Positions 3,731 to 62,085 of a stretch of 64,000 nucleotides of DNA are shown here, one piece after another (within the stretch, counting starts at the first letter, position 1; every line of letters starts with the position of its first letter). Below the pieces are notes generated by a model. That model did not search any database. It was not told where the DNA came from and worked only from the letters and a program-made list of their open reading frames with translations. The position numbers and the translations under genes were made by a program. The DNA is from Prasinococcaceae sp. CCMP 1430 (Eukaryota > Plantae > Prasinodermophyta), in assembly GCA_013416795.1 (NCBI GenBank), contig RQSC01000806.1, positions 62,001-126,000 of the forward strand, read 5' to 3'.

Positions 3731-5440
3731 TCACTTCTTCTTCGCGCGCGGCTTGGGTGGGGCCCTGGCAATCTTCTTGACTTTCTCAGCCGTGAACGTG
3801 TGCTCAGCGGCCCTCTCTCGCTTGCGTGCCTCATGTTCGCGCCTCCGGAAGTCCTTGGCATTGGGAGCCTCCTTATAATACTCTTTTGTGCGCGCGATTG
3901 AGCGAAGTGTGTCAGCATCAGGCCACCAGGCGCACGACAATCGCTTCGATCGATAGGACACATGAGCACTCGGGGTCTGACACACCTTCAAACTCCTCAT
4001 CGAAGGCCACCAGCCGCGGTTTGACGGGGTGCAGCTTGTGGTCCAGAGAGCGGGCAGGTGTCAGCGCAAGAGAGTCGCGATCAGAAAGGTTGCGATCGGC
4101 GTCTGTTGCGAGCGCGAGCGCATGCGTGCGGGACGAGTCCACACCTTCTTGAAGCGCTTGAAGTTCGGCTCAGCATCGCCAGTGTTGTTGTCTGGAGTCG
4201 GCTGTGCTTTGGGAAGTCGCGTCAGGTCAACCATCTCTACATACTCGATTGTCGCACAGCCCTCCGCAGCAGCCACGTCTGCGCTGTGGGGCGATTTGCG
4301 TTCGTCAGCCGCGTCTACCCCGGCTTCGAGCTTGAGCTCTGGCGCTGGTACGGCGCCGCCTTTGTCACCATGGGCGTCCACGGGCGCCCCTGATTGCGGA
4401 GCGTCATCGGCAGCTCCGTTTGCGTCCAGCATTGCCTCCTCAGGCACCTGCGTCTCATCTTCAGTAATGTCCTCATCCGTTGCGCCTTCTGTCCGCACCT
4501 CAATGTGCTGCATCGCCTCCGCCGGGCTGCTCGTGCCAGAGGCCACCGCGACGATGGCATCACACAGTCGACCTGGCGACGTGCGCCGCCTTCCGGGCAC
4601 GCAGTCACAGTAGCTCTCCTCGTCGACGTGCATGACACCGGAGTCCACTGCCGCCTCCACGATGACACCTCCGGCTGCCTCAATCAGCGCGATGACATCT
4701 GCTCGGTCACCCAAGCCATGTCCAACGAAGAATCGCTCATTGCGCAGGAGCGTCGCAGCCTGTGCTCTGCCTTCCGCGTTCGCCCCGCCCGCCGCTGGGT
4801 CGAGTGAGTGCTCTGCTGCGGGCGGCAGCGGCCAGTTTGCCGGCCCCGCCGATCGCGCATCAGCAAGCGCTTGCAGCCATGCCGGTCGCACGAGCGTGGC
4901 GCCTGTCACAGCGCTCAGAGCTCGAGCGGCGACGCCAGGTTTCTTTCCGCTGCACACCAAGTGCGTCACTCCGTGCGTCCATTGCTGCTGAAGACTCACG
5001 CCACCTGCCCTTGCGCTCTGTTGCACAGCCGCAGCTGCGGAGGCATCAAATTCGCCTGAGCACGCTGCGCATGGCACAGGCTCGCGCAGGACCTCGTACG
5101 CAGTCGCATTGACCCCGAGCCGAATGACGTCTTTGTCTTGGAGCTCCGAGACGCCCCCCTTTGCCAGCTTGTCCCATGCGGAGTTGACGCGATTTTGGAT
5201 CCATGTGCCATACTTCGAGCCGAGGTCGGTTATGGTCAGGCCGGGCGCTTCGTCCACGCCACCAGCGGGGCGCGCCGAGAACTGCGCGTGCCGGCGCGAG
5301 AGACTCTTGTCCTCGATGAATATGTCCACGTCGTCGCGTCGCTTTCCGCCCTTGGAGGTGTCGGGCTCGCGCCCGACGACGACGTCGCCGCGCTCGCGGT
5401 GGCCCGCGCCGCCAAGGCCGCCGCCGCCGCCGTCCGACTC
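3731..5440 (-). CDS. NBS1: Nibrin/NBS1 (FHA + BRCT, Mre11-binding motif); inferred exons ~5440..4145, 4034..3986, 3882..3731; start codon not located
   Basis: FHA motifs VVGR..SLSRRHA..DLGSKYGTW; BRCT-like THLV..LVRPAWL; NFKRFKK motif; in-phase spliced C-terminal exons end ..RERAAEHTF..KKK*. Confidence 0.85.
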
Positions 5441-5559
5441 CTGAAGCGCGCAGCGCGCGCCGTGTGGCGCCGGGGGCGCTCCGCCGCCGCGCGGCCTCTG
5501 CGCGTCTGAGGGCCGCCTCCGCCACCCGCACGCGCGAAAACGGCCGAGAATGCGCCTCT

Positions 5560-5717
5560 ATCAAAACGCATTCAAGATTCGATAGCGCTCGCATTCCTTC
5601 GCAGCGCGATAAATCCCCATCAAAGCGCATTCAAAATACGACGGCGCTCGCATCTCTTTTCTGGGCAGCTCGATAAATCCCCATCAAAGAGCATGCCAAA
5701 TTCGAAGAGCCGCTCGC
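5560..5717. repeat. Degenerate ~60-bp triple tandem repeat in the NBS1/AAA-ATPase divergent promoter
   Basis: ATCAAA at 5560, 5619 and 5683, each followed by GCAT..CAA..T.CGA..GCGCTCGC-like sequence; GATAAATCCCCATCAAAG occurs twice exactly. Confidence 0.8.
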
Positions 5718-5918
5718 GGTGCTGCCTTCGCCGTCAGTCGAGACAGCGCGCGAACGCGCGCCACAGCAGCGCGCGGCGGCGGGCGCAGAGCCCCCCCGTC
5801 GCCACCGCCGTCACCACACACGCCGGCCCGTCTGCGTTCGGCGCACCTGGCGTGTGGGGATCCTTCCTCGCAGGGGAGTCCGATTGCGTGCGGGCTGCGG
5901 GGGCACGCGGCGGTGCGA

Positions 5919-8900
5919 ATGGACGCGCCAGGCGGCGCGCGCAAGCGGTCGTTCGTCGTTCCGAGCCGGGGTGGACAGGACGAGGGGGCGCGGGAGGGCA
6001 GGACACAGCGCCAGGGGCATGGAACATCAGAACTGTTTCAGCGTCTCTGCCGCAACTCTGGCAGCAATGCCGCTGCAGCATCATCTGACCGTGCTGACTC
6101 GGTCACGCGCTCGAGAAGCGCCAAGGTCGGCGAGCCCGACAGGATGCAGCTGAGCACCGAGCCCGCGGATGGCATGACAGTGCCGGTGAAAATGGATGAA
6201 AAGCGAGCCTGCCCCCCTGCACAGCGTGAGTGCACTTCGCAGGAGCATCATCCAGCAGCGGTGACAGCGGGAGTGGGGGAGAATCAGCTGCCAGTGTCGA
6301 ATGACATGTTTTACGCCCTGCTCGAGGAGGCAGGTAATAGGCACGCCGATGGCCACCCCTGCGCTGACGACGACGACACCCCTATGGACGAGGACGAGGA
6401 CGGAGATCGTGCCAGCGCTGACCTTGACCGTACAAACGCAGACCGCATCGCAGCAGCAGAGATTGCTGCCGCCCCTCCCGCGTCGTGCACGGCCCAGCTT
6501 CATTGCGACGAGCAAAGGACGGGCTCTTGTCAGCCAGCACCCACAGAGGCAAAAAGAATGCAAAGTATTGACTGCGTTAGCCCACAGCCAGCGCAAAGCG
6601 ACTCGTCGCAACGCGTATTGTCTGAGTCACGACGCTCGCCTGCCGAGGACACAGGCGTCAACACGCACATCGCGGTCGCAGAGCTCACCGCAGAGCCGTC
6701 GAGCGCCTGCGCAACACTGGGTCCAGACACAGCGCGGATCGTGCCAGCATTGAAGGATCAAGACGGCGAATTCCCTCGACCCATTGATCGGCTGGTTGCA
6801 GCGTGCAGGGAGACGAAAGAGGAGATGGATCATGGCGCTGACGATATGGCAGAGGATGACGCAGTCATCGCGGGCCTCGACTCAAACGCACGAGCAGGCG
6901 CTGCAACCGGCGAGAGCGACAAGCAAACATCGCCAGGCGAGACTACGGACTCAGCGAAGGAAGAGCACGCACATCCACGCGTACATTCTCAGGCAGTATC
7001 TACGCATGAACCTCCAACTGGTGGCTGCACCACGGCAGCGCCGGAGCAGGAGCCTCGCGGTGTCCTCAAAAAGACCCGTGGGTCGGAGGCGCCGGCACCT
7101 GTGGAGCAAATCGTGCCGCTGCTTCCTCCTCTTGCGGCGGGCGCTCCTTCCTTGACCAAGGATGCGCAGGCACAAGCAGTGCATTTCCCAGGAGCGGCGG
7201 TGGGCTCTGGCACATCTCTGCCGCCTCTTCAGCACGGGGCACTTGCTCCCCCCACAACCGATGGAAGCGCTCCCCTCGCGCCCTCGCTCTGCCTATTCAG
7301 GATGCTCAGTGCAGCACGGGACACTCGCGACGCCGCAGCCAGAGCGGCTCGCGCAGAAGATCGGGACGACCTCGCGGAAGCTCTTGCGGCGTATGGACAG
7401 GCAAGCGAGGCGGCGGGCACGTACATGCACTACCACCAAGAACTGATCACCCAGGCAACGACGCCAGGCGCGATGGATCCCAACGATTGTGGTGGCGTCA
7501 AGTCCGTGGACACGCCCCTGGCTGACGCGAGCAAGCAGTTCTCCCTCCTTACATCGGTAGTGTTGAGCTCTCGGCAAGTGTTCGGTGAGCGCGCGGAAGT
7601 CATTCGCCATCTTGCTGCTGAGTACGCATATGATGTAGTGCCGCAGCCGCAGGTAGTGACGATGCAGGCAATCGGCAGAGGTGAAAGCTGTGACGGGAAT
7701 GACAGGTCTTCTCCAGGCATTAACCAAACTACCTTGGCCTGGAAGGACGCAAACGGCAGCGAGCTTGACGGTGGTCCCATCATGGTGCCCGTGACTCGCC
7801 CGCACGGGGGTTACGCTTTCTACCAACCCAATGCCGCTATTTCCAATGGAGGGTACGACCCTGACTACGACAGCCAGTACGCCGATGTAGCTCAACAGTC
7901 ACTTCACGAGCCGGTTGTGACCTTTGAGGACATCTCTGGGCTCGACGAGCTCAAGACTGAGCTCTACGAGAGCGTCGTCCTGCCCGGTGTGTGGCCCGAG
8001 GCATACGCGGCTCCGTTGCGCGCAGCGAGTGTCGCTGTGCTCCTTCATGGCCCACCCGGAACGGGCAAATCAATGCTGGCCGAAGCAGCCGCCAACGAGG
8101 GTGGTCTGCGCATGCTCCTCGTCAAACCGAGTGTGGTCCTTTCCAAGTACTTCGGCGATAGCGAGAAGGGTACGCTGTGCGCATGAGCGCGCGCTAAATG
8201 TGCATAGTCACTAGTGACTATACACGGTCTGGCACCTTTGCGAGCTCTGACCATTGTTGACATGCGATCTCGATCACCTGAATCCGGGGTGAAGTGATCC
8301 GCTCAATATTCTGCCTGGCCCGCTCCCTCGCGCCTGCCTGCGTGTTCTTCGACGAGATCGACGCTATTGCCACTTCGCGCGGTGCAGATGGCAACAGTGA
8401 CGACACTGCATCGCGCCGACTCTTGTGCGAGCTGCTGCTGCAGCTCAACGACCTGCGATCGGAGAGATCGAGCCACACCGCGAGTCGTAGCGCGGGAGCG
8501 AGAGACAGCAAACCGCCGCACGTCGTCGTGCTTGCTGCCACCAACGACATCAGATCGCTTGACGAGGCCTTTTTGCGGCGCTTCGATAAGCGCCTCGCCG
8601 TCCCAATACCCGGCGAAGACGCCCGCTGCGATCTCATCACGCACATGCTCTCAACTGGGGGCGTTGAATACGAACTCACCGCCGCAGACATTGCTGCAAT
8701 TGCCTGCGAAACGAACGGGTATTCGGGGAGCGACTTGCGCTGCCTGTGCCGCCACGCAGCCATGGCGCCCGTGAGAGAGGCCGTCGAGCAGTGCGGGATG
8801 CACCTATTCGAGCACGGCCTCGACGATAGCGACCGCTGCAGCAGAACGCCCTCCCTTCGGCCTTTGCTGCTTTCCGACTTCATGGCTGCTCGCAACGCGG

Positions 8901-8983
8901 TGCCGGCGAGCACCGCCAAGGCGCCTGGCAAGGCATCTACCACGCAGGGCCTGACCCTGCCCAGCAATAGCATGGAGATATGA
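5919..8983 (+). CDS. Meiotic-clade AAA ATPase (VPS4/katanin/spastin-like) with MIT-like helical segment and long disordered N-terminus; exons 5919..8169, 8295..8983
   Basis: VTFEDISGLDELK, Walker A LLHGPPGTGKS, SKYFGDSEK|VIRSIF across the intron, Walker B VFFDEID, VVLAATN..LDEAFLRRFDKR, GYSGSDL. Confidence 0.88.
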
Positions 8984-9379
8984 CGACCTTGGACCGCCAT
9001 TGCGTGCAAAAGACTACCCACCTGACTCTGCTACATACCAGACGGCATGATTGCACTACCCGCAGCATCTGCTCATTTCTATTGACTTTCTTCGTTTGTA
9101 GAGTGACCTTCGTGTTCTGGACCGCCCTTCTGCAACGTTTTGGTCTGCGCGAAAAGTGCGCTCAGTGCGAGGCAATGCAATGCGCGCGTCCGGCGCACGG
9201 CGACACACAGGCGCCACACCGCGCGCCCCGCCCACGCCTCCATCCCGCGCCGCGCCCGTCGCTCGCTCGGGCCGTGCGCGCCCTCTTCTTACCGCACCTC
9301 CCCTCCTACAGGCGCCGGCGCGCGCGCGTGCGTTGCGCGCGCGCCGGCGCGAGGCGCGTCTCTCTCGTCCGAGGCGTGG

Positions 9380-10709
9380 ATGCCAGCTGCTGCGCCCGGA
9401 GCGATGCCGCCCACGGCGCTGCCGGCGCCGCGCGCCCTGAGCGTGGCCGAGGCGGAAGCGCTGGCCACCCGTGCGATGGTCGCGGCAGGTGCGCCACCGT
9501 TCGTCGCCGCACCTCTTGCGGCATCCCTCGCCGCCGCCGAGCGCGACGGCTGCCACTCGCATGGTCTGCACCGCCTGCCGCAGATCACCGCGATCATGCG
9601 ACGCGGGCGCGTTGCGCTGCACGCGAGGCCCGTCGTCACCACACCGCGCTCAGGCGTCGTGTGCGTTGATGCGGGCGGTAATCTGCTTGCGCCCGCGCTC
9701 GACGCCGCGTTTCCTGCGGTAGCGGCCGCCGCGCGCGCCAATGGTGTGGCTGTGGCGTCCGTTGCTGGGTGGCGTGGTATCGGCGGCACACTGTGGCAGC
9801 CGGCGGAGCGCCTCGCGGTGAACGAGGGCCTGGTGTGCTTGCTCGCAGCCAACACGCCGCCGTACGTCGCGCCGCACGGCGGCAGAGAACGGCTGCTAGG
9901 TACCAACCCGTTCGCGTTCGGCTGCCCAGGCGCGCCGTGTGATGATGGCGCCGAGGCCGAGCCGCAGCCGGCCTTCGTCTTCGACTTTGCGACGGCGGCA
10001 TGCGCCCGTGGTGAGATTGAGGTGCGACGGAGAGCCGGCACGCCACTGGATTCTGGATGGGCGGTCGACTCATCCGGCGCGCCTACGCGCGCCCCCGCCG
10101 CGGCACTGGACGGAGCGCAGCTACCGTTCGGGGGACACAAGGGATCAGCAGTGTGCGCCATGATAGAGCTCCTCGGAGGCGCGCTGCTTGGTACCGACCT
10201 CGCCATCGACTGCCAGCCAGGCGACGCGCTTGAGGACATGCGGCGGGGCCTCACCATCATTGCAATCGACCCAGCGGCCACCACCGATTGCGGGAGGTGA
10301 GTGCATCAGTCGCGCGCGCAGGTGTGCCCCAACGATCCCACGGAGTCGCGGCAATGCTGCGCGCACACACGTGCAGGCCTCGATGTGCGTCTGTAACGGC
10401 GCCGCGAATGCTGACGCGCGCGCGACGAACGCACGCGTGCGCATCCACGTCCACATTGACTCGGCACGCGCGCGCACGCGCGCGCGCCCGCACACACGCA
10501 CACACAGTGCTTCCTTTCGGCAACGAGCTTCAACGTTTGCCGATGCGCTGCGCGCTGACCTGGCGAGCTGCGGCGGTCGGCTCCCGGGCGACCGCCGCCG
10601 GCAGCACCGGCGCGAGGTCGACGCCGGGGAGCGGCGCATCGAGATAAGCGCCAAGCTCATGGCCGAAATAGAGGAGCAGATGGAGGAGAATGCTGCATCC
10701 ACACATTGA
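9380..10709 (+). CDS. Malate/L-lactate dehydrogenase type-2 (Ldh_2) family NAD(P)H oxidoreductase, DpkA/ComC-like; exons 9380..10296, 10508..10709
   Basis: AERDGCHSHGLHRLP, LGTNPFAFGCP, FDFATAACARGEIE, LPFGGHKGS; the second exon supplies the typical RLPGDRR C-terminus in phase. Confidence 0.85.
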
Positions 10710-10744
10710 CAAGAATGCGCCCCCGGCGGGGATTTTGTCTACCC

Positions 10745-11461
10745 TCACATGAGCACGCACTGCGAGCTACCACTGTCGTCAGAGCTGGCCTTGCCCTTGC
10801 CCTTGCGCTTCTTCTTGGTTGGCTCCTCCACCCAGCCACTCTCGAGCTATCCACGCGGAGGCCAAGAGGAATCGCGCGCGCGCGCCATGCACACATGTGC
10901 GCGGGCGCATACCCGCGTGTCAGCTCGCGCACGGGTGCACGCGAGCCAACCAATCGAACGCATCCGCGCGGCCTCGCAAGAGCGTGCGCCCAGGCGGCGC
11001 ATGCGCAGCGGCACGCACGTATTTGCCCTCAGGCTGAATGTAGGCCTTCCTCTTGCTGGCAAATCCCGCGGCACCGCCCGAGGAGGACTTCATGCCCTTG
11101 GCCTTGTTCGACTGGGCGAGCTCGGCCAGCGTGCGCGGCTTGCCAGAGTTGCTGGCACCGCCCTGCGGCTGGACGCGGCGGAGCGCGACGGGGTACCCAC
11201 CGCACCGGGTGCAAAGCGCGTCAGTCAGCGGCTGCACACGGGACAAGGAGGGTGGAGCGTCGCAGGCGCCACATTCAGGCAGGACCATCCAAGCACGCGC
11301 ACGCGAGAGTGTGCGCGAGCGCGCCAGCCCTTGAGCCCGTGACCGCGCCCCGCGCCCGCCCCGCGCGCCGCTTCCGCCCGCCCCGAGCGCGCGCGCGAGA
11401 GAGAGAGCCGCGCCCGCCCGCCCCCGCCGCGCACCTTCTTGAAGCCGTCGAACAGCCCCAT
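10745..11461 (-). CDS. Small uncharacterised protein with polybasic stretch and C-terminal CaaX (CVLM); inferred exons 11461..11435, 11231..11019, 10846..10745
   Basis: Three phase-0 exons with canonical sites give MGLFDGFKK|PLTDALCTRCGGYP..QPEGKY|LESGWVEEPTKKKRKGKGK..SSQCVLM*; the N-terminus may extend upstream. Confidence 0.6.
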
Positions 11462-11832
11462 CGACGTCACGGCGCGCATCGCGGACGCGGGCATCGCCGC
11501 CGCAGGAAGGGCCACGAGCGCGCGTGCCGGGGGGGGGGAGGAGGCGGGTGGCTCCTGTGGCGCGCCTCGCTGCGCAGCGCCAGCACGAGCGGATAAGGGT
11601 TTAGATGGCGTGCGACGATACATTTCGCGGAATTTTCGAACGCGAAACTTACATCCGCAAAGTAACCGAAATTCTGTCGGTGCGAGCTCCGTCGCGCGCG
11701 GGGCGCGCCCGGCTTGAGCGAGCGCGCACGCGGACGCGCGGGCGTCGAGCGTGCATGCGCGCGCCCGCGCGGCAGGCACGCGGCGGCAATTTACGTGGGC
11801 CAGCCGGCATGGCGCGGGGCGCGCGCGCGCCA

Positions 11833-14800
11833 TCACGGCCGCGGCGGGGCTCCGACGGCCAGCCCAGCCGCGACCGCCTCCTCGAGTACGGGGTGTATCA
11901 TGCGCCTCGCGAAGGTGGTGGCGTAGTCGACAATGGCCTGCACACTGTTGTAGGCGGCGGCATTCCGCGCGACGCTCCAGCAATCGTGCGCGAACGCCGC
12001 CAGCGTGCGGTAGTACCCGTTCTGCACGCGGCTGCGGATGAGCTGCGACTCCATGGGCACGGCGACTATGTCCGCATACCCGGGCAGCTCCACCCACTGG
12101 TCGGCCGTGTCGAAGTAAACGGCACCATGGCAGGTGTTCACTGCAGTCTCCATGGCCTGCAGCAGCTCTGGCGCGCGTGCGCTCACGTCGGGGTAGGTGA
12201 AGGCCTCGTGCAGGCCGAGGGCATCAGGGCCTGGGTCACGCAGCTCCCAGAAACTGTGACGCATAGCCGCCTCTGGCGGGTCGCCATCGTATTGCACGTG
12301 TATGGCCTGCCAAGGGCTCGTGCTGTAGCCTGGGTCGATTGGCTCCACCTTCAAGACAATGCCAGAGTACAGGTCCCCTTTGCTCGTTTGTCCCTCTCGG
12401 CCCCACCACACGTGACAGGGCTGACCGGGCAGCCATCGCCCGCGCAATACCGTCACGTCGTAGAGCTTGGCATGCACGATGAAGTCTGGATCTTCGGAGG
12501 GTTGCAAGGCGACGTCGAACTCGCTGCCAGCGAGAGGGCTTCCCGCTGTGGTGATACGAAGCTTAAGTTGCGCGACTGCTTTGCCCGTGATGTCATCGAC
12601 ACCGTACTCCATCCCGAACACCTCACACCGCTCCACCGGCTGCAGCTGCCGCCTTTCGGCGCCCCGCAGGGTGTTCCAGAGCGCGGAGCGCTCCGCGGCC
12701 ACATCTTGCGTGTTCTCGAGCACCTGCTGATGACCCTGCCAAAGATACACCACTTCGTCCCCTAGCTGGGGTATGTACAGCGGGCCGTCCGGGCAGTCAT
12801 CGCGGCGCAGCCAGCCAAAGTGGTCGAACGTTCGCGCACCGCGAAAGTTGGTCAAGCGGCGCCCAGGCGACGGTCCCTGAGCCTGCGCGGTAGTTTCCGG
12901 CACGTACTCGTCCTCCGTCTCGCCTTCCGACACTTCGTAGTACATGGAGCGCGCGCGCCGGCGCCGCTTGCTAGCCCTTGCCGGCACACCCTCCTCCCCC
13001 TCGTCTCCAGCCTCCGCGTCTTCGTCGTCCGATTCAACACGCCGGCGACGACCGCTGCGACTGCGCGAACTTCCAGCCCCACCTGCCCGCGAGGAACCAC
13101 CGCCTGACCGCGAACGGCCACCAAGCCGCCTGCCCCTGCCACGACGCCTGGCCCTTGAAGGGGCATCGTAGTCGTCGTCATCGTCGTCGTCTTGATCGAT
13201 CAGCTGATCATAGTCGTCGTCGTCCTCCTCGCTATGACCGAGGTGCTCAGCAGCGACGTCAGGGTCGTTCTCCTCATCGTCGTCGGAGTCGCGGTCCTCG
13301 ATGTCAGCGAGGGTCATCATGCGGGGACCCGTGGTAGGGCCACCAGCAACGGCGGCCGTGCCAGCCGCCCGCTCGACGGGCGCGGCGGCGCCTTGTGCCG
13401 GCGCCATGCCCGCGCCATTACCGCCCCGAACTATGCCCGCCCCGGCGTTCGCGCCCCACACTGCTTCAGCGGGGTTTACCGCCGCTGCCAGCTCCTCGGC
13501 GACGGACCCACGAGTGCCACCAGTGCCGCGTGCCACCGCGATCCGCTGCTGTGGCGTGAGCTCCGGTGCACCCAATAGGCGCCTGCTCTGGAACGTCGAC
13601 TGCACGGGGTCGGGGTACGGATCAAAGCTGTGGTCACAGAGCAGCTCGGCAGTTGGCTCGTTGTCTGGCTCCATGCCACTCGCCTCGTGGAACGCCCGCC
13701 CGTCGCTGCTGCGTCGTATCGGATCGAAGTCGCGCTGGAGGAATTGCTCGACGGGGGCAGACGTGTGCCCCCACGCCTGAGGACCGCCGCCCGGCGCACA
13801 ACCAACGTCAAGCGTCTCCCAGTAGCCGACATTGTCTGAGATGAGGACATACGTCCCGTCATTCGACCACCTGCCGTCGTACACCTCGTCGCAGTAGGCA
13901 CCGCGCCCCTTCGCAAGCGCCGACCCGGTGAGAATGTCCCAAATGATGACCTGCCCGTCGTAGCCCGCACTCAGAATAAGGCGAGGATCGTACGGGTGAG
14001 GATTGACGACGAACACATCTTTCGCGTGCGCCTTGAGGGTGTGCTGCAGATTCCCGGTCGAGGCGCACCACACGCGCAGAGAGTGATCCGAGTACGCCAG
14101 AAAGATGTGCCGGTCGTCAACTGTCCAAGCGCCAGTCTGAATCGCCAGGTAGGTTGGGCGCGGGCCCTCGCGCCGGCGGTCGCGCCGCCGCTCGCCGCCG
14201 TCCTCTCCAAGCGCGTTTGGTGCCGGCGCTTCGACCGCGAGCACACCCGCGCACTCCCAGCCTGTGGCGATCACGTCGCCTGCCGCTAGGCGCGGCCGCC
14301 ACACGCGCGCAGTCCCGTCCTTCGACACAGTCAGCATGGAGTCCGTGTTGTTGGCCCACTCGACGAGCGTGACGTCGTTCTTGTGGCCGCGAAGAGTGAA
14401 GAGAAGTTTCTCACTGTCGCGACGGATGTCCCACACCTTGACAGTGCAGTCCTCGTACGCAGCTGCCATGAAACGCGCAGTCATGTTGAACACCGTAATG
14501 TACACCTCGTTGGTGGCCGACGCAGGCGCGGCCGCTGGGCGCGCCGGCTTGAGCGTCCGCAGCGAGTCACGCGCGTACTTTCTGCAGTCCCAGAGCTTGC
14601 ACGAGCCATCGTCACTGGAGCTGGCCAGCACGTACTCCGCCGGTGCGCACATGGGGGGCGCGCTCCGGATGGCCTCTTCGACGACGAATGCGAGGCTGGT
14701 CACAGGGCCCAGGTGCCCCAGGAGCACCGCGACGCACCGCCCCGAGGCTAGCGACCAGACGCGGATGCCGCCGTCGTTGGCGCTGCTGGCGACGTATTCA

Positions 14801-15501: not shown

Positions 15502-15581
15502 NNNNNNNNNNNNNNNNNNNNNNNNNNNNNNNNNNNNNNNNNNNNNNNNNNNNNNNNNNNNNNNNNNNNNNNNNNNNNNNN
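15502..15581. other. Assembly gap (others at 35256..35386, 39011..39050, 51453..51604, 61776..61937; single N at 21932, 44960, 50596, 63121)
   Basis: N runs in the sequence, all within extremely GC-rich context. Confidence 1.
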
Positions 15582-33494: not shown

Positions 33495-35386
33495 TCAGTT
33501 TTGCGCGTGCGGAAGAGAGGACGCGTCGCCGGCGCCCCCTGGCTGAGTGACGACGGTCACGGAGGGGCCCAACAGCGCGGAGCTCCCTCCATTCGCGCGG
33601 CCGCGGCCGGAGTGATCGCCGTTGCTGCCGTCCCTGGAGTGCGCGCCCTCGTCGTCGCCCGGGCAGCAGTCGTTGAGATCGCATCGCTGCACCGTGATGG
33701 TGTCCACACGCCGCTTGTCCGCTTTCACGACGGTGACAAGCCACTTGGCACTGCGGCTCTCGCCCACGTCCTGCCCCTCGTCGTGGCCGTCCACGTCTTC
33801 CGCCGCCATGGCCTCTGCGGCATCCCAGTTGAGCTCGACGACCGCGCGCTGGCCCGCCTGAGCGATGTACCCGTTGAAGGCGGCGCTAATCGCCCACCCC
33901 GACACCATGTCGTAGTCACCGTCTGGCGGGGATACGCCGAGCATCTCACTGAAGTCGTCCATGCGCGTCTGCCAGGCGTCGCGCACGGTGGCGGCGCTCG
34001 GACGCCCAGCGGCGTCGCGCGCGTCCACGGCGACCGACGCCAGGTCACGCTGCGCGCGGTTCGCCTCGCCTTGCTTCTCGTCGTAAATCTCCCCGACCAG
34101 CGACTCGAGCACGTCCTCCAGCGTTGCGATGCCTACCACCCCGCCGCTCTCGTGAACCAGGCACGCCATGTGCAGCCGCCGCTGCTGGAGCTCGCTGAGC
34201 AAAGCCATGTGCGACATGGTCTCGCTCACGAACACAGCCTCATGCATCAGGTCCCTCACGCGCGAGTCGAGCGAGATGCCCGCCAGCGACGCCCGCGCGG
34301 CCCCCCCGCCGCCGTGCTCTCCCGCGTGCGTCGCACTCGGCCCAGCCATCGCGCGCGCGACGCCGTCGCCCCCAACCTCCGCGTCAGACTCTAGCTGGAG
34401 GGTATCGACGAGCTCGAGCAGGTCCGCAGCGAAGGCGATGCCGATGACGTTGTCCACGCGCTTCGAGTACACGGGCACGCGCGAGAAGCGGTGCTGCCGC
34501 CAGAGCTCGTACAGCGCGCCGAGCGGCGCGTCCCCGTTGACGGCCACCACGTCGCACAGCGGCGTCATGCACTCGGCCACGGGGCGGCTGTCCATGTCCA
34601 TGGCGCGCTCCACCAGCGCCTGCTCCCCTACCGACAGCGAGCCCGCGTCGCCCGCGCCGGCCACCACCAAGCGCAACTCCTCCTCCGACACCTCGGGATT
34701 GGCGTCCGGGTCGACGCCGAACAGCCTCAGCAGCACGTTGGATCCCGCGGTGAGGCAGCGCGACAGCGGGTACAAGGGCACGCTCAGGGCGTTCACGGCG
34801 GGCAGCAGCAGCCGCGCCAGCGGGGTTGCGAAGGTCACCGCGATCGTCTTGGGCACGATCTCGCAGAACACCAGCACCACCACCGCGAGCACCGCGGCGC
34901 TGATCGCCACGCCCTTGGGGCCGAACATGCAGCCCGCAAGGTACGCCGCCAGCGTGGATGTGGCCACGTTGGCCAGCGTCGAGCCGATCAGGATGGTCGA
35001 CAGGAAGCGCGACACGTCCGACACGGTCGCCGAGAAGACCCCCCTCTCTCCGCGCTCCGCCTCCTCGCCGGCCAGCTCGCGCATCTTCCAGGGCCACAGC
35101 GTGGTGAGCGCGATCTCCACCAGCGAGAAATACGCGTTGACGAAGAGCAGGGCCACCAGCGCGGCCAGCGCGCCCATGTCGAGCGCCGCCCAGTCGATCG
35201 CTGCGGCGGCGCGCGCCTGCGGCGGCGCCGCGGAGGCCGCCCCCACGCAGCCCTCNNNNNNNNNNNNNNNNNNNNNNNNNNNNNNNNNNNNNNNNNNNNN
35301 NNNNNNNNNNNNNNNNNNNNNNNNNNNNNNNNNNNNNNNNNNNNNNNNNNNNNNNNNNNNNNNNNNNNNNNNNNNNNNNNNNNNNN

Positions 35387-36573: not shown

Positions 36574-37329
36574 ATGCGCCACAACCACAACCAGAGCCAG
36601 ATCTCGTTCGGCGAGGAGCCGGTGACGTACGGCATGCGCTCGGACGCCCGCGCCAACAGCAGCAACGCCTACGCCAACGGCGCCGACCAGAACTGCGGCA
36701 ACTTCATCACCGACCGCACCACCAGCCGCGTGCTCAAGGCGCCGGGCGGCGGCTCGTCGATCTCCTTCGGCGACGAAGCCCCCGCCGGCCAGCTCCAGCA
36801 GCAGGCGCCGACGCGCCGCGGACCGCCTGCCTCGCAGATCTCGTTCGGCTACGACGAGGCCCCCGCCCCGGCGCGCGCGGCCCAGCCTGAGCAGGCGACC
36901 TACGGCATGCGCTCGGACGCCCGCGCCAACAGCAGCAACGCCTACGCCAACGGCGCCGACCAGAACTGCGGCAACTTCATCACCGACCGCACCACCAGCC
37001 GCGTGCTCAAGGCGCCGGGCGGCGGCTCGTCGATCTCCTTCGGCGACGAAGCCCCCGCCGGCCAGCTCCAGCAGCAGGCGCCGACGCGCCGCGGACCGCC
37101 CCCCGCGTCGCAGATCTCGTTCGGGGGGGAGCCGACTACCTATGGCATGCGCTCGGACGCCCGCGCTAACAGTAGCAACGCCTACGCCGACGGAGGCAAC
37201 CAGAACTGCGGCAACTTCATCACCGACCGCCCCACGAGCCGCGTGCTCAAGGCTCCGGGCGGTGGCTCTTCGATCTGCTTCGGCAGCGAGAACGTCAACC
37301 CCCAGCACACCGGCCATTGGACCCGCTAA
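36574..37329 (+). CDS. SPIRAL1-like (PGG-motif) microtubule-associated protein with three tandem repeats
   Basis: Three copies of YGMRSDARANSSNAYA.G..QNCGNFITDR.TSRVLKAPGGGSSI.FG, matching the SPR1 C-terminal motif QN(C/T)GNF.TDR.ST.V.AAPGGGSS. Confidence 0.75.
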   Translation: MRHNHNQSQISFGEEPVTYGMRSDARANSSNAYANGADQNCGNFITDRTTSRVLKAPGGGSSISFGDEAPAGQLQQQAPTRRGPPASQISFGYDEAPAPARAAQPEQATYGMRSDARANSSNAYANGADQNCGNFITDRTTSRVLKAPGGGSSISFGDEAPAGQLQQQAPTRRGPPPASQISFGGEPTTYGMRSDARANSSNAYADGGNQNCGNFITDRPTSRVLKAPGGGSSICFGSENVNPQHTGHWTR

Positions 37330-37665
37330 ACGAGGCGTCCCCTAACTGCGGCGCGCCTCCATTGCGCAGCCGCATGCATCGCTGGCCACCAGTAGTCCTT
37401 AAGTCCTAATGACGCTCGCGACCCGAGCATAACGCCACCGCTCTTTTCGAGCGCATCGACCCGGCGGCGAGCGCGTCGCCACGCCCGGCGCAGCGGTCAC
37501 TCGCGCACGGCGCTCGGCAGCCGGGGGTCGTTCTGTGAGTGCAAAGAGTGTCGTGCAACATTATCGCGCGAGGCATGCCCGCCAGCGCTCGCGCGGGTCG
37601 TCGAAGCAGGAATCCCGCGCGTGCGCGCCCAGCCACCACCCCCGCGCGCGCGAGCGCCGTGCTTG

Positions 37666-38337
37666 CTAGCTCGCCAGCGCCTCGAGCACGGGGTCGAAGC
37701 TGGTGACGAACCAGTCCGCGCCCTCGCGGATGACGTCGCGCGCCACGACCCCTCCGTAGCCAATGAAGACGTCCGCACCGCCCTCCGCGCGCGCCTCGAG
37801 GTCGGTCGCGCCATCGCCGAACATGAGCACCGTCTGCTTGCCACGAGCCGCGCGAATGTGCGCCACTGCGGCCGCCTTGCCACCGCTGCGGCTGGTGAAC
37901 GCCTCCTCGTCGAAGCCCGCGTACGTGCCCGCGGGCTCTTCTCCCGCGCTGCCGCCCTCTCCGTGGAAGAGGATGGTGTTCGCGAAGATGTTGTCGTGCG
38001 GCACGCCGAGCTCATCCGAAACCGGCCTGATCATCTGCGTAAAGCCGCCAGACACGAGGAAGACCTCAGTGCCGCGAGCCTGCAGCGCTGCGACGAGTTC
38101 CTTGATGCCGGGCGACAGACGCGGCGGGTTGTTTGCGAGGAAGTCGGCCAGCTGCGCCTCGGTGGGCTCGATGAGCGAGAGGCGCGCGGCGAGCGCCTCC
38201 CGGAAGCCCACCGAGCCGCCCATGGCCTTGGCCGTCCACGCCGCGACGGCCTCGCCCGCGCCGCAGGCTGCCGCGAGCTCATCGATGCCCTCGTCCACGC
38301 ACACGGTAGAGTCCACGTCGAAGCACGCCGCGTCGGC
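37666..38337 (-). CDS. PSP: Phosphoserine phosphatase (HAD superfamily); native 5' end unclear
   Basis: [68 protein letters not shown]. Confidence 0.92.
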
Positions 38338-38655
38338 GCCGCGCAGCGCCGCGAGCAGCTTTTCCTTGAGACCGCCGATCGGCAGTACGCGACCGCGCAG
38401 CGTGACCTCGCCCGTCATCGCGATGTCCTTGCGCACCGACACGCCGGTGAGCGTCGAGACAATCGCGGTGACCAGGCCGATGCCGGCGGACGGACCGTCC
38501 TTGGGCGTCGCGCCTTCCGGCACGTGGATGTGGATATCGCTCTTTTCAAACACCTCGGACTTGATGCCAAGGCGGCTGGCACGACTGCGCACCACGGTGC
38601 GCGCCGCTTCGATCGATTCCTTCATCACGTCGCCCAAGGTACCGGTGCGGATCAC
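38338..38655 (-). other. lon: Bacterial-type Lon protease C-terminal proteolytic-domain fragment (~106 aa), in frame with PSP
   Basis: [64 protein letters not shown]; no Lon ATPase domain nearby. Confidence 0.92.
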
Positions 38656-39050
38656 GTACTCCGGGCGGTGGCTCTTCGATCTGGCGCGGCGCGCGCGCGC
38701 GCTGTGGCACGCGCACCGAGCGATCGGCCCCAGGCAGCCCGCAACGGAGTTTCGCGGAGCGACGCGCATTTCGGAGCCGTCTTTACGCCCCCCGAGCCTC
38801 GCGCGTCGTCTCATTTCACGGAATAATTTGGGAGGCGGTTCGGGCGTTCGCCCGAGCTGCCGCCCGCGCCGCAAAAACCTGCGCGCGCGCGGGTGCGTTT
38901 TGACCTGCGAATCGGATGTGAGTCGCCCGTGGGTAGATGTGATGGTGGTGTGGGAGTGTGGAGGGCGCGCGCGCGCGCGCGGGCCGCGGGCGCGCGTGGG
39001 CGCGCCAGAGNNNNNNNNNNNNNNNNNNNNNNNNNNNNNNNNNNNNNNNN

Positions 39051-40571
39051 GCGGCGGCGGCGGACGGCGCGCGCTCGGGCGCGGCGGCGGGCCCCGGCAA
39101 GGCGACGGGAAAGAGCGTGGATCTCAAGCCGTGCCGTGGCACGCGCGACTTCCCGCCCGAGGAGATGCGCACGCGCAGCTGGCTGTTCGGCGCGTTCCAC
39201 GACGTCGCGCGCGCGTTCGGCTTCGAGGAGTGGGACGCGCCCGTGCTCGAGAGCGAGGAGCTGTACACGCGCAAGGCGGGCGAGGAGATCACGGGGCAGC
39301 TCTTCAACTTCGAGGACAAGGTGCGCGCGGGGAACTGAAGGGCGCGCCGCTCGGGGGCGCGTGCTGCGCCGCGCCTTCCCCCCGCACACTGCGCCCCTTC
39401 CCCCCCCACCTCCCCATCTCCCCCCAGGCGCGCCATGCACGCGCGGCTGGCTGACGCGCCCGCCCGCCCCTCACCCCCGCACTCCCGCACACGCTCGCAG
39501 GGCGGCCGGCGGGTGAGCCTGAGGCCCGAGCTCACGCCATCGCTGGCACGGATTGCGCTGTCCAAGGGGAAGGCACTGTCGCTGCCGGCGAAGTGGTACG
39601 CGATCGGCCAGTGCTGGCGATACGAGCGCACGACGCGCGGGCGTCGCCGCGAGCACTATCAGTGGAACATGGACATCATCGGTGTGCCCGGCGTCAGCGC
39701 CGAGGCCGAGCTGCTCTCCGCCATCGCGACGCTCTTCGAGCGCCTAGGGCTGAGCTCGGCGGACGTGGGCATCAAGGTGTCCTCTCGCAAGCTCCTCCAG
39801 GGCGTCGCGGCAAAGTACGAGGTGCCGGACGAGCTCTTCGCGCCCGTGTGCGTCGTCGTGGACAAGCTCGACAAGATTGGCGCCGAGAAGGTGGAGGCGG
39901 AGCTCGCCGAGCTCGGCGTGGGCGCCGACGCCGCGCGCGGCATTTTGAACGCGCTCGGCATGAGCTCCATCGACGAGCTCGCGGCGGAGCTGGGTGAGGA
40001 GGCTGAGGCCGTCGTCGAGCTGCGCGAGATCTGGTCGCTCTGTGAGGGGTACGGAATCGCCGACTGGCTAGTCTTCGACGCCAGCGTCGTTCGCGGCCTC
40101 GCGTACTACACTGGCGCCGTCTTCGAGGCGTTCGATCGCAAGGGTGAGCTGCGCGCCATCTGCGGCGGCGGCCGGTACGACACGCTGCTGCAGACCATGT
40201 CGGGCGGCAAGGCGGGCGTGGGGCAGCCCATGGTGGGGTTCGGCTTCGGCGACGCCGTCATCATGGAGCTGCTGGCGGACAGGAACCTGCTGCCGGAGCC
40301 CGCGGCGACTGCAGACGACGTCGTGGCCATCATGGACGAGACGCTGCGGCCGCAGGCGCTGGATGCCGCGCGGCGGCTGCGCGCGGCGGGGCGCAAAGTG
40401 GACGTCGTGCTTGAGCCCAAGAAGTTCAAGTGGATCATCCGCCACGCCGAGCGCTCTGGGGCGGAGCGGTTGGTGCTGGTGGGCTCGCAGGAGTGGCAGA
40501 AGGGTTGCGTGCGCGTCAAGGACCTCGCAAAGCGCGAGGAGCAGGACGTGCCCCTTGACGAGCTCGTCTGA
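39051..40571 (+). CDS. HisRS: Histidyl-tRNA synthetase, probably organellar; exons <39051..39320, 39501..40571 (N-terminus in gap)
   Basis: [33 protein letters not shown]|[54 protein letters not shown]. Confidence 0.95.
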
Positions 40572-50562: not shown

Positions 50563-51668
50563 GCCGCCCGCGCCGTCCCATCCGGCGAGCGCCGCNTACG
50601 CCTACGCCGACGGCTACCATGTCAACGACCTTGGTAACGCCCACCCGCTCCCCTAAGCAAGCACAGCACCACACGCCCCTCATGCGCGCGCGCACCCCTG
50701 CGCACAGCGCCGCCCGCCGCCGCCTGCCGCGCGCTTTTCCCTCGGCGGCCGCGCGTCCTTCCGCTTCCCCCCGGATTCGCCGCCCTCCTTCCGCGAGACC
50801 GCCCGCCCCTACCGAATCCGTCCCCACCTCTCCGCGTGGTGGCGCTTTCGCCGGGCAAAAACTCCGCGAAAAAAAAGACGCGCGCGGGCGCGCGCCGCCC
50901 CAGGCGCGCGCCCGCCCGCAGAGATATTTTCTGCAACTTTTACTTTTTGTTTTTACTTGATGCTCCCTTTTGCGCAGACACGCATGCACAGACGGGGAGA
51001 CAGGCACGCGCCGTTCAACAAGAAGCAGCACGCCAGAGTCCAGCGGCGGGGGGCGGCAGCAACATCAAACTCACGCTGTATCACGGTGCCATCATCGTGC
51101 CATCATTTATTTCATGGGAATGCCCGCTGCTGCAGCCGCAACCGACCGAACCGACGAGGCTCCCGACCCACAGACCGAACCCGGAGACAGCCACAGCCAA
51201 TCAGCCGACCGACCGAGTGGGCGTGCGCGGTGATTCGTTTTTGTTGCGCCCACATCCTATTGGACCATTGCCGTTTTCGTCGCCGGCCGGTGCCGGAAGG
51301 AAGGGCGGGCCTTGTTTTGTCCATCGTTTTCGGGGGTTCGACGGCGACGTTTGGCGCGCGCGGCGCGCGCTCTTTTTTTTTCGGGCGCCGCCGCTGCGCG
51401 CGCGCGCGCGCGCGCGCTTTTCGCCTGGCGCGACAGGGCGGCGCGCTCGCGGNNNNNNNNNNNNNNNNNNNNNNNNNNNNNNNNNNNNNNNNNNNNNNNN
51501 NNNNNNNNNNNNNNNNNNNNNNNNNNNNNNNNNNNNNNNNNNNNNNNNNNNNNNNNNNNNNNNNNNNNNNNNNNNNNNNNNNNNNNNNNNNNNNNNNNNN
51601 NNNNCGCCGCGTTCGACGGGTCGGTGCGGGGGTGGTGCGGGGCGGGGCCGTGGGCGCCGCGACGCGAT

Positions 51669-61440: not shown

Positions 61441-62085
61441 GTCGAGCGCGAGGAGGAGGCCGCGCGCGCCGAGCGCGAGCAGGAAGAGGAGGGCGACAAG
61501 ATGCGCGCGCTGGAGAACAAGACGAAGCAGTCCAAGCGAGAGATGGAGCTGCTCGAGGCGCTCGACGAGATGACGCACCTCCGCCGCCGGCAGGAAATGG
61601 CCGGGCCCGAAGCGGCGCTGCGGGCGCTCCACGCCGCGGAGTACGCCAAGGAGCCCGAGGGCGACACCGAGCTGGAGGCCGTCGGCGGCGTCGGTGGGAG
61701 CGAGGGCGCCGGCGGTAGCGGCGGCGGCGCGGACGCCGGAGCGCAGGCGGCGGCCAGCCTGGCCGCCGAGGCTGANNNNNNNNNNNNNNNNNNNNNNNNN
61801 NNNNNNNNNNNNNNNNNNNNNNNNNNNNNNNNNNNNNNNNNNNNNNNNNNNNNNNNNNNNNNNNNNNNNNNNNNNNNNNNNNNNNNNNNNNNNNNNNNNN
61901 NNNNNNNNNNNNNNNNNNNNNNNNNNNNNNNNNNNNNCGCCGCCGCGGCGGGTCAGTCGGCGCCGCCGCCGGCGCCGCGCCCGTTCGTTCGCGAGCGGCT
62001 GACCGAACGGGCGCAAAACGCAGAGGATGCGTGCAAAAACACAAGGGGCACAGTTTCTGGCATCTCTGTTGCGCACACTCATTAA
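61441..62085 (+). CDS. YJU2/CWC16 (CCDC94)-like C-terminal fragment lacking the N-terminal zinc domain; possibly a pseudogene
   Basis: EEEGDKMRALENKTKQSKREMELLEALDEM resembles the CCDC94 coiled-coil motif; interrupted by the gap 61776..61937. Confidence 0.55.
   Translation, partial: VEREEEAARAEREQEEEGDKMRALENKTKQSKREMELLEALDEMTHLRRRQEMAGPEAALRALHAAEYAKEPEGDTELEAVGGVGGSEGAGGSGGGADAGAQAAASLAAEAXXXXXXXXXXXXXXXXXXXXXXXXXXXXXXXXXXXXXXXXXXXXXXXXXXXXXXXAAAAGQSAPPPAPRPFVRERLTERAQNAEDACKNTRGTVSGISVAHTH

Follow-up and report, generated by a model that had tools for sequence, protein, structure and literature searches.

Bacterial Lon proteases of the LonA type (endopeptidase La, MEROPS family S16) combine an AAA+ module with a complete Lon_C domain. 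Their Ser-Lys dyad lies in two conserved motifs, PKDGPSAG (with GPSAG at its core) and GGLKEK (GLKEK).

Eukaryotic phosphoserine phosphatases (PSPs), such as human PSPH and the plastidial PSP of plants, are HAD-IB proteins of the SerB/PSPH type. Their HAD fold contains the DxDxT nucleophile motif. The plastid PSPs of land plants carry an N-terminal extension of about 70-100 residues.

A third structure to be compared is a by-product of sequencing. Draft genomes can contain chimeric patches that stem from the reagent "kitome". In such patches, sequences from Oxalobacteraceae and Sphingomonadaceae are joined within conserved stretches, an N gap lies nearby, and a GC-rich stretch has been displaced.

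The locus described here can be read against all three. It lies in a window of 64,000 nt from Prasinococcaceae sp. CCMP 1430 (contig RQSC01000806.1), in which a fragment of Lon_C appears to be fused in frame to a PSP. The 325 nt at 38358-38682 are almost certainly an assembly or gap-fill artefact, a patch made from trace bacterial reads that is not part of the alga's genome. The Lon-PSP protein does not exist, and the locus represents neither horizontal gene transfer (HGT) nor a functional fusion. The features of the locus are collected in Table 1.

Table 1. Features at and around the apparent Lon-PSP frame, in window positions. X1, X4 and X15 are contigs of other sequencing runs; L003, L081 and L083 are Lon loci.
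Feature	Position	Strand	Evidence or remark
ORF of 251 aa with three tandem repeats of ~80 aa (…YGMRSDARANSSNAYANGADQNCGNFITDRTTSRVLKAPGGGSSISFG…)	36574-37329	plus	just downstream of the PSP gene
Stop-free ORF as assembled, 402 codons/aa from TTG	37666..38874	minus	contains the Lon_C part, then the PSP part
Genuine algal PSP, 3' part, 230 codons to ...EALAS and the stop at 37668-37666, intron-less	37666..38357	minus	PRCOL_00003809-RA; contigs X1, X4, X15; human PSPH
21-nt stretch coding (L)LAALRG(A), native PSP, also matched by sphingomonad Lon	38337..38357	minus	site of the Lon-to-PSP joint
Foreign patch part 2, Sphingomonadaceae-type Lon_C coding sequence	38358..38478	minus	protein and nt identity; missing from X1, X4
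Crossover zone of two bacterial sources, codes PKDGPSAGI (Lon catalytic-serine motif, common to both)	38479..38505	minus	informative sites
Foreign patch part 1, Oxalobacteraceae (Massilia/Duganella)-type Lon_C coding sequence	38506..38656	minus	informative sites, aa and nt identity
Garbled 5' end of the patch	38657..38682	minus	comparison with L083, L081, L003; X1 and X4 match again only from 38683
True algal DNA preceding the PSP gene, intergenic or 5' region	38683..39010	minus	X1, X4 with 0 differences
Run of 40 N (scaffold gap)	39011..39050		330 nt upstream of the patch; eight further N runs lie elsewhere in the window
Histidyl-tRNA synthetase gene	39435-40571	plus	tRNA-synt_His (E 2e-31) and anticodon-binding domain; divergent from the PSP gene

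As assembled, the frame passes from the Lon part to the PSP part with neither a stop nor an intron between them. Pfam places Lon_C on residues 74-179 of the ORF (106 residues, window 38655..38338, E 1.7e-52), but the match spans only positions 56-161 of the 205 in the profile. In NCBIfam the same residues match endopeptidase La, and across Lon_C and TIGR00763 the E-values are about 1e-49 to 1e-52. The PSP part follows with a HAD/Hydrolase match at residues 181-365 (Pfam), a SerB match at 176-389 (NCBIfam) and an alignment with human PSPH (1l8l) at 177-398 (E 7e-57). Neither an AAA+ domain nor a Lon N-terminal domain was found in the 402-aa ORF by Pfam or NCBIfam.

The original prediction had described this frame from the letters of the window, with its strand, its Lon_C span, its lack of a Lon ATPase domain and of introns, and the passage through KLLAALRG directly into PSP. 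Each of these points is confirmed for the assembled sequence. The Lon_C span is exact as a domain boundary, but the foreign DNA as delimited by independent contigs is slightly longer, 38358-38682.

Both dyad motifs can be read in the translation of the ORF, although they come from two different bacterial sources. In other respects the patch is unlike LonA: it is a piece from the middle of one domain, accompanied by neither AAA+ nor N-terminal domain and put together from two sources, and it is missing from contigs of DNA (X1, X4) and RNA (X15, X16) in which the PSP part is found.

These contigs come from Logan assemblies of two DNA runs, belonging to different studies, and two RNA runs, which were compared with 37340-39010. 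The comparison covered assembled contigs, and Logan contigs demonstrate presence rather than absence.

In both DNA runs, which are of the same organism, the two flanks of the patch stand on a single contig (X1 record 1, 4057 nt; X4 record 18, 4034 nt). Each contig matches 37340-38357 and 38683-39010 with 0 differences, and 244 other letters replace the 325 of the window between them. A wider sample points the same way. Twelve studies supplied 14 DNA runs of the alga; each run contains 0.77 of the sampled words of 37500-39010, and the missing share, 0.23, equals the size of the patch. In the runs of the organism, depth falls to zero in the bins 38404-38571, which are touched only by short fragments of the marine metatranscriptome (2-4 mismatches), as is expected of conserved bacterial Lon.

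One of the DNA runs also contains a 4986-nt contig (X1 record 2, depth 6.3) that matches the window over 38 nt with one mismatch, at 38348-38385 only, in a conserved coding stretch. The patch does not stem from this contig, which probably represents the Lon gene of a bacterium present in that run at a low level, as contaminant or associate.

Transcripts of the PSP gene lack the Lon segment, which answers a question raised when the fusion was first described. A contig of the same organism, whose label as RNA is a guess (X15), matches 37572-38357 with 0 differences, and a contig from a marine metatranscriptome (X16) matches 37550-38357 with 5 differences. Both diverge from the window at 38357 and continue with the same unrelated letters. 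On the minus strand this continuation translates as AAAAPAPEH followed by VLAALR(G).

The continuation is the N-terminus of a protein already in EukProt. PRCOL_00003809-RA of Prasinoderma coloniale (254 aa, P0001) begins MAATAARAAAEGAATAAAAPAPEHVLAALRG and is 100% identical to the PSP part over 229 aa. Its N-terminus is encoded nowhere in the window, as judged by tblastn. The annotated start codon falls within the 244 letters displaced by the patch, and along with it the PSP gene has lost its first 24 codons and its 5' leader. This native stretch is very GC-rich, with GCG/GCC runs that code alanine. The 244 letters were read in part only (at most 30-40 letters from contigs), and the stretch across the patch site is predicted to code MAATAARAAAEGAATAAAAPAPEH.

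The real gene is thus PRCOL_00003809, an ordinary intron-less PSP of 254 aa. Its product matches Pfam Hydrolase and HAD, and the part encoded at 37669-38357 can be aligned with human PSPH over its whole length and contains DVDST as its DxDxT motif. The match to TIGR00338 (serB; E 4e-38) scores 131 bits, under the 144-bit equivalog cut-off, and phosphoserine-specific phosphatase activity is a prediction from homology. The PSP relatives listed, among them land-plant and Mesostigma proteins, are 57-68% identical to the algal protein. Instead of the long extension of land-plant plastid PSPs, P0001 has a short Ala-rich one. With the patch removed, the algal PSP shows nothing unusual among eukaryotic PSPs.

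The composition of the patch is a second line of evidence. Compared as a whole, the Lon piece is 83-87% identical to its closest relatives among the matches listed (Duganella, Massilia, Janthinobacterium, Telluria), and its best match among those listed from genome contigs reaches 85% in amino acids and 83% in nucleotides (Duganella, Massilia). Its two halves behave differently. Residues 1-52 agree with Massilia-type Lon at 51 of 52 positions (P0127, P0129, P0130, P0132 and Duganella L001), and with the alphaproteobacterial Lon proteins compared at 27-36 of 49 (Sphingomonas, 27-29 of 49). Residues 55-106 agree with the Massilia type at only 41 of 54 positions, but are identical at 52 of 52 to a Lon from an ENA metagenome (P0243) and 96% identical to the Lon of Sphingomonas sp. 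7/4-4.

There are 33 informative sites. The first 20 are all Massilia-type (20:0) and the last 13 all sphingomonad-type (0:13), a split with a Fisher p of 1.7e-9 at the best breakpoint. The last Massilia-type informative residue is the codon 38508-38506 and the first sphingomonad-type one lies near 38478. The switch between 38506 and 38478 therefore falls in the PKDGPSAG-coding stretch, which is common to all Lon genes.

At the nucleotide level, part 1 of the patch is 83-90% identical to L003 and L083 and part 2 about 90% identical to L082. The best nucleotide matches for either half, in the DNA of the best protein matches (L081-L084), reach about 88-90%. From these similarities the contaminant sources may be placed at family level, as Oxalobacteraceae and Sphingomonadaceae. 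A betaproteobacterial first half and an alphaproteobacterial second half had been suggested, and the identities and the 20:0 / 0:13 split bear this out. Near-identity to extant bacteria, named beforehand as a sign of an artefact, is present in the proteins (98% in the first half, 100% in the second) but not in the nucleotides.

The moderate nucleotide identity of both halves suggests that the sources are unsampled species, and it could be asked whether they are one species, a single unsampled bacterium with a Lon that is Massilia-like in front and sphingomonad-like behind. The patch would still be an artefact. Such a source is very improbable, given that the switch is abrupt and complete, that the halves point to different proteobacterial classes, and that none of the 440 Lon sequences compared fits both halves well. 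Nor did a search of 5.8 billion proteins turn up the mosaic in any protein of 221-703 aa.

The joints of the two-source patch can be located closely. Both internal joints, Lon to Lon and Lon to PSP, sit in stretches common to the two partners. At the Lon-PSP joint the native contigs match the window from 38357 downwards, and the alignments with three Lon loci (L082, L084, L045) reach as far down as 38337. The 21 nt between these limits are common to native PSP and sphingomonad Lon, which upholds the earlier proposal of a joint through a shared LLAALRG-coding stretch. No obvious shared stretch was seen at the upstream joint, 38682/38683, where the native letters have been read only in part. A joint with no evident overlap is a difference from chimeras made by k-mer gap closing.

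The upstream end of the patch also accounts for the first residues of the apparent protein. Within 38657-38682 the letters ATCGAAG fit the codons of Lon "IE(A)", and what follows them falls short of Massilia Lon by 8 nt. The Lon frame is therefore broken at the 5' end of the patch, and translation reads through into what appears to be a short basic N-terminal stretch. This stretch is a read-through of non-coding upstream sequence, as is the open frame across 38683-39010. GC-rich non-coding DNA contains few stop codons. Patch and native stretch differ in length by 325 - 244 = 81 nt, a multiple of three, so the phase is kept by chance. The single open frame results from this divisibility and from the upstream non-coding DNA being stop-free in a GC-rich genome.

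A course of events can be proposed. Short-read coverage tends to fail over extremely GC-rich sequence, and it was probably lost over the native stretch. A program that extends or closes gaps by k-mers or overlaps, which appears to be the type involved, may then have left the PSP gene via the 21-nt LAALRG-coding stretch and entered sphingomonad Lon reads. It would have crossed to Oxalobacteraceae Lon within the near-invariant PKDGPSAG-coding stretch, and the result would finally have been butt-joined onto the other flank.

The surroundings of the patch are those of a draft. The window has nine N runs (15502-15581, 21932, 35256-35386, 39011-39050, 44960, 50596, 51453-51604, 61776-61937 and 63121), four of them a single N, as is usual in short-read scaffolds after gap closing. 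The few hundred bases around each N run could contain other patches of foreign or misplaced sequence. The genome of P. coloniale CCMP 1413, a PacBio/NextDenovo assembly, is described as 22 chromosomes (PMC7455551). The window's assembly consists of at least 184 pieces with N gaps, and so appears to be a different and more fragmentary one.

Recurring sequence surrounds the upstream flank. At 38684-38739 and 38964-39010 the summed contig depth is 4,000-14,000, compared with about 30-80 elsewhere, and there are many short joints. Both stretches are GC-rich and of low complexity (GCGC/CGG), and they recur genome-wide, which accounts for the many spurious "joints" in the read comparison. These recurring stretches probably explain the assembly trouble at the locus.

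Massilia, Duganella, Janthinobacterium and Sphingomonas are not known as typical marine companions of cultured algae. All four genera appear on a list of reagent contaminants (PMC4228153). The patch is like the kitome chimeras of other drafts in its two families, its joints in conserved stretches, its nearby N gap and the GC-rich stretch that it displaces.

A real and recent bacterial insertion, specific to the clone or strain in the sequenced culture and replacing the 5' end of the PSP gene, would be a non-functional case of HGT. It would fit the frame being open across the whole ORF, and the evidence against it rests on contigs of other runs rather than on reads of the window's own assembly. 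The patch has a GC3 of 0.84, not far below the 0.89-0.91 of neighbouring algal genes, a difference too small to decide. However, the flanks show 0 differences in 1346 nt to the contigs with the native sequence, which argues for the same strain, and the words of the patch are missing from the 14 DNA runs. The insertion would also have displaced 244 nt, and with them the start codon of apparently the only PSP gene in the window. Finally, a mosaic of two classes with joints placed exactly in conserved stretches is the product of an overlap algorithm and not of integration. Such an insertion is very improbable.

That the alga makes a functional Lon_C-PSP fusion acquired by HGT was rejected and has a negligible probability: the frame does unite GPSAG, GLKEK and an intact PSP, but the organism's transcripts and the published gene model have no Lon, Lon_C is cut at both ends, joins two classes and lacks an AAA+ module, and a HAD domain is absent from all of the 120 best-scoring Lon_C matches listed in the search of 5.8 billion proteins.

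Of the two readings offered by the original prediction, the genuine domain fusion is unsupported. Independent DNA contigs have the native 244 letters in place of the Lon stretch, and two donor classes occur within 300 nt. The reading towards which it leaned, a multi-source assembly or gap-fill chimera, is supported by DNA contigs, transcripts, gene model and mosaic alike.

The genes on either side raise separate points. The repeat protein at 36574-37329 matches Pfam JUPITER (Jupiter/HN1 microtubule-associated) as a whole (E 3e-10; 40.5 bits, cut-off 27), although no single stretch of it passes alone. From its sequence, it looks like an algal Jupiter/SPIRAL-like repeat protein. On the other side, the histidyl-tRNA synthetase gene may start near 38958, ahead of the N gap. 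The ORF 38958-39338, which spans the 40 N, codes for N-terminal sequence resembling that of the synthetase, and the gap therefore lies within or next to the 5' portion of the gene.

For the biology of the organism the patch has no import, since the alga has an ordinary phosphoserine phosphatase. Its importance is one of data hygiene. From this assembly, a gene caller or HGT screen would credit an early-diverging green lineage with a fusion of bacterial Lon to PSP, and the true start of the PSP gene is missing from the assembly. The pattern, a mosaic of reagent-type bacteria about 300 nt long next to an N gap, may recur elsewhere in the genome. Findings of bacterial fragments in this assembly need comparison with independent contigs before they are read as HGT.
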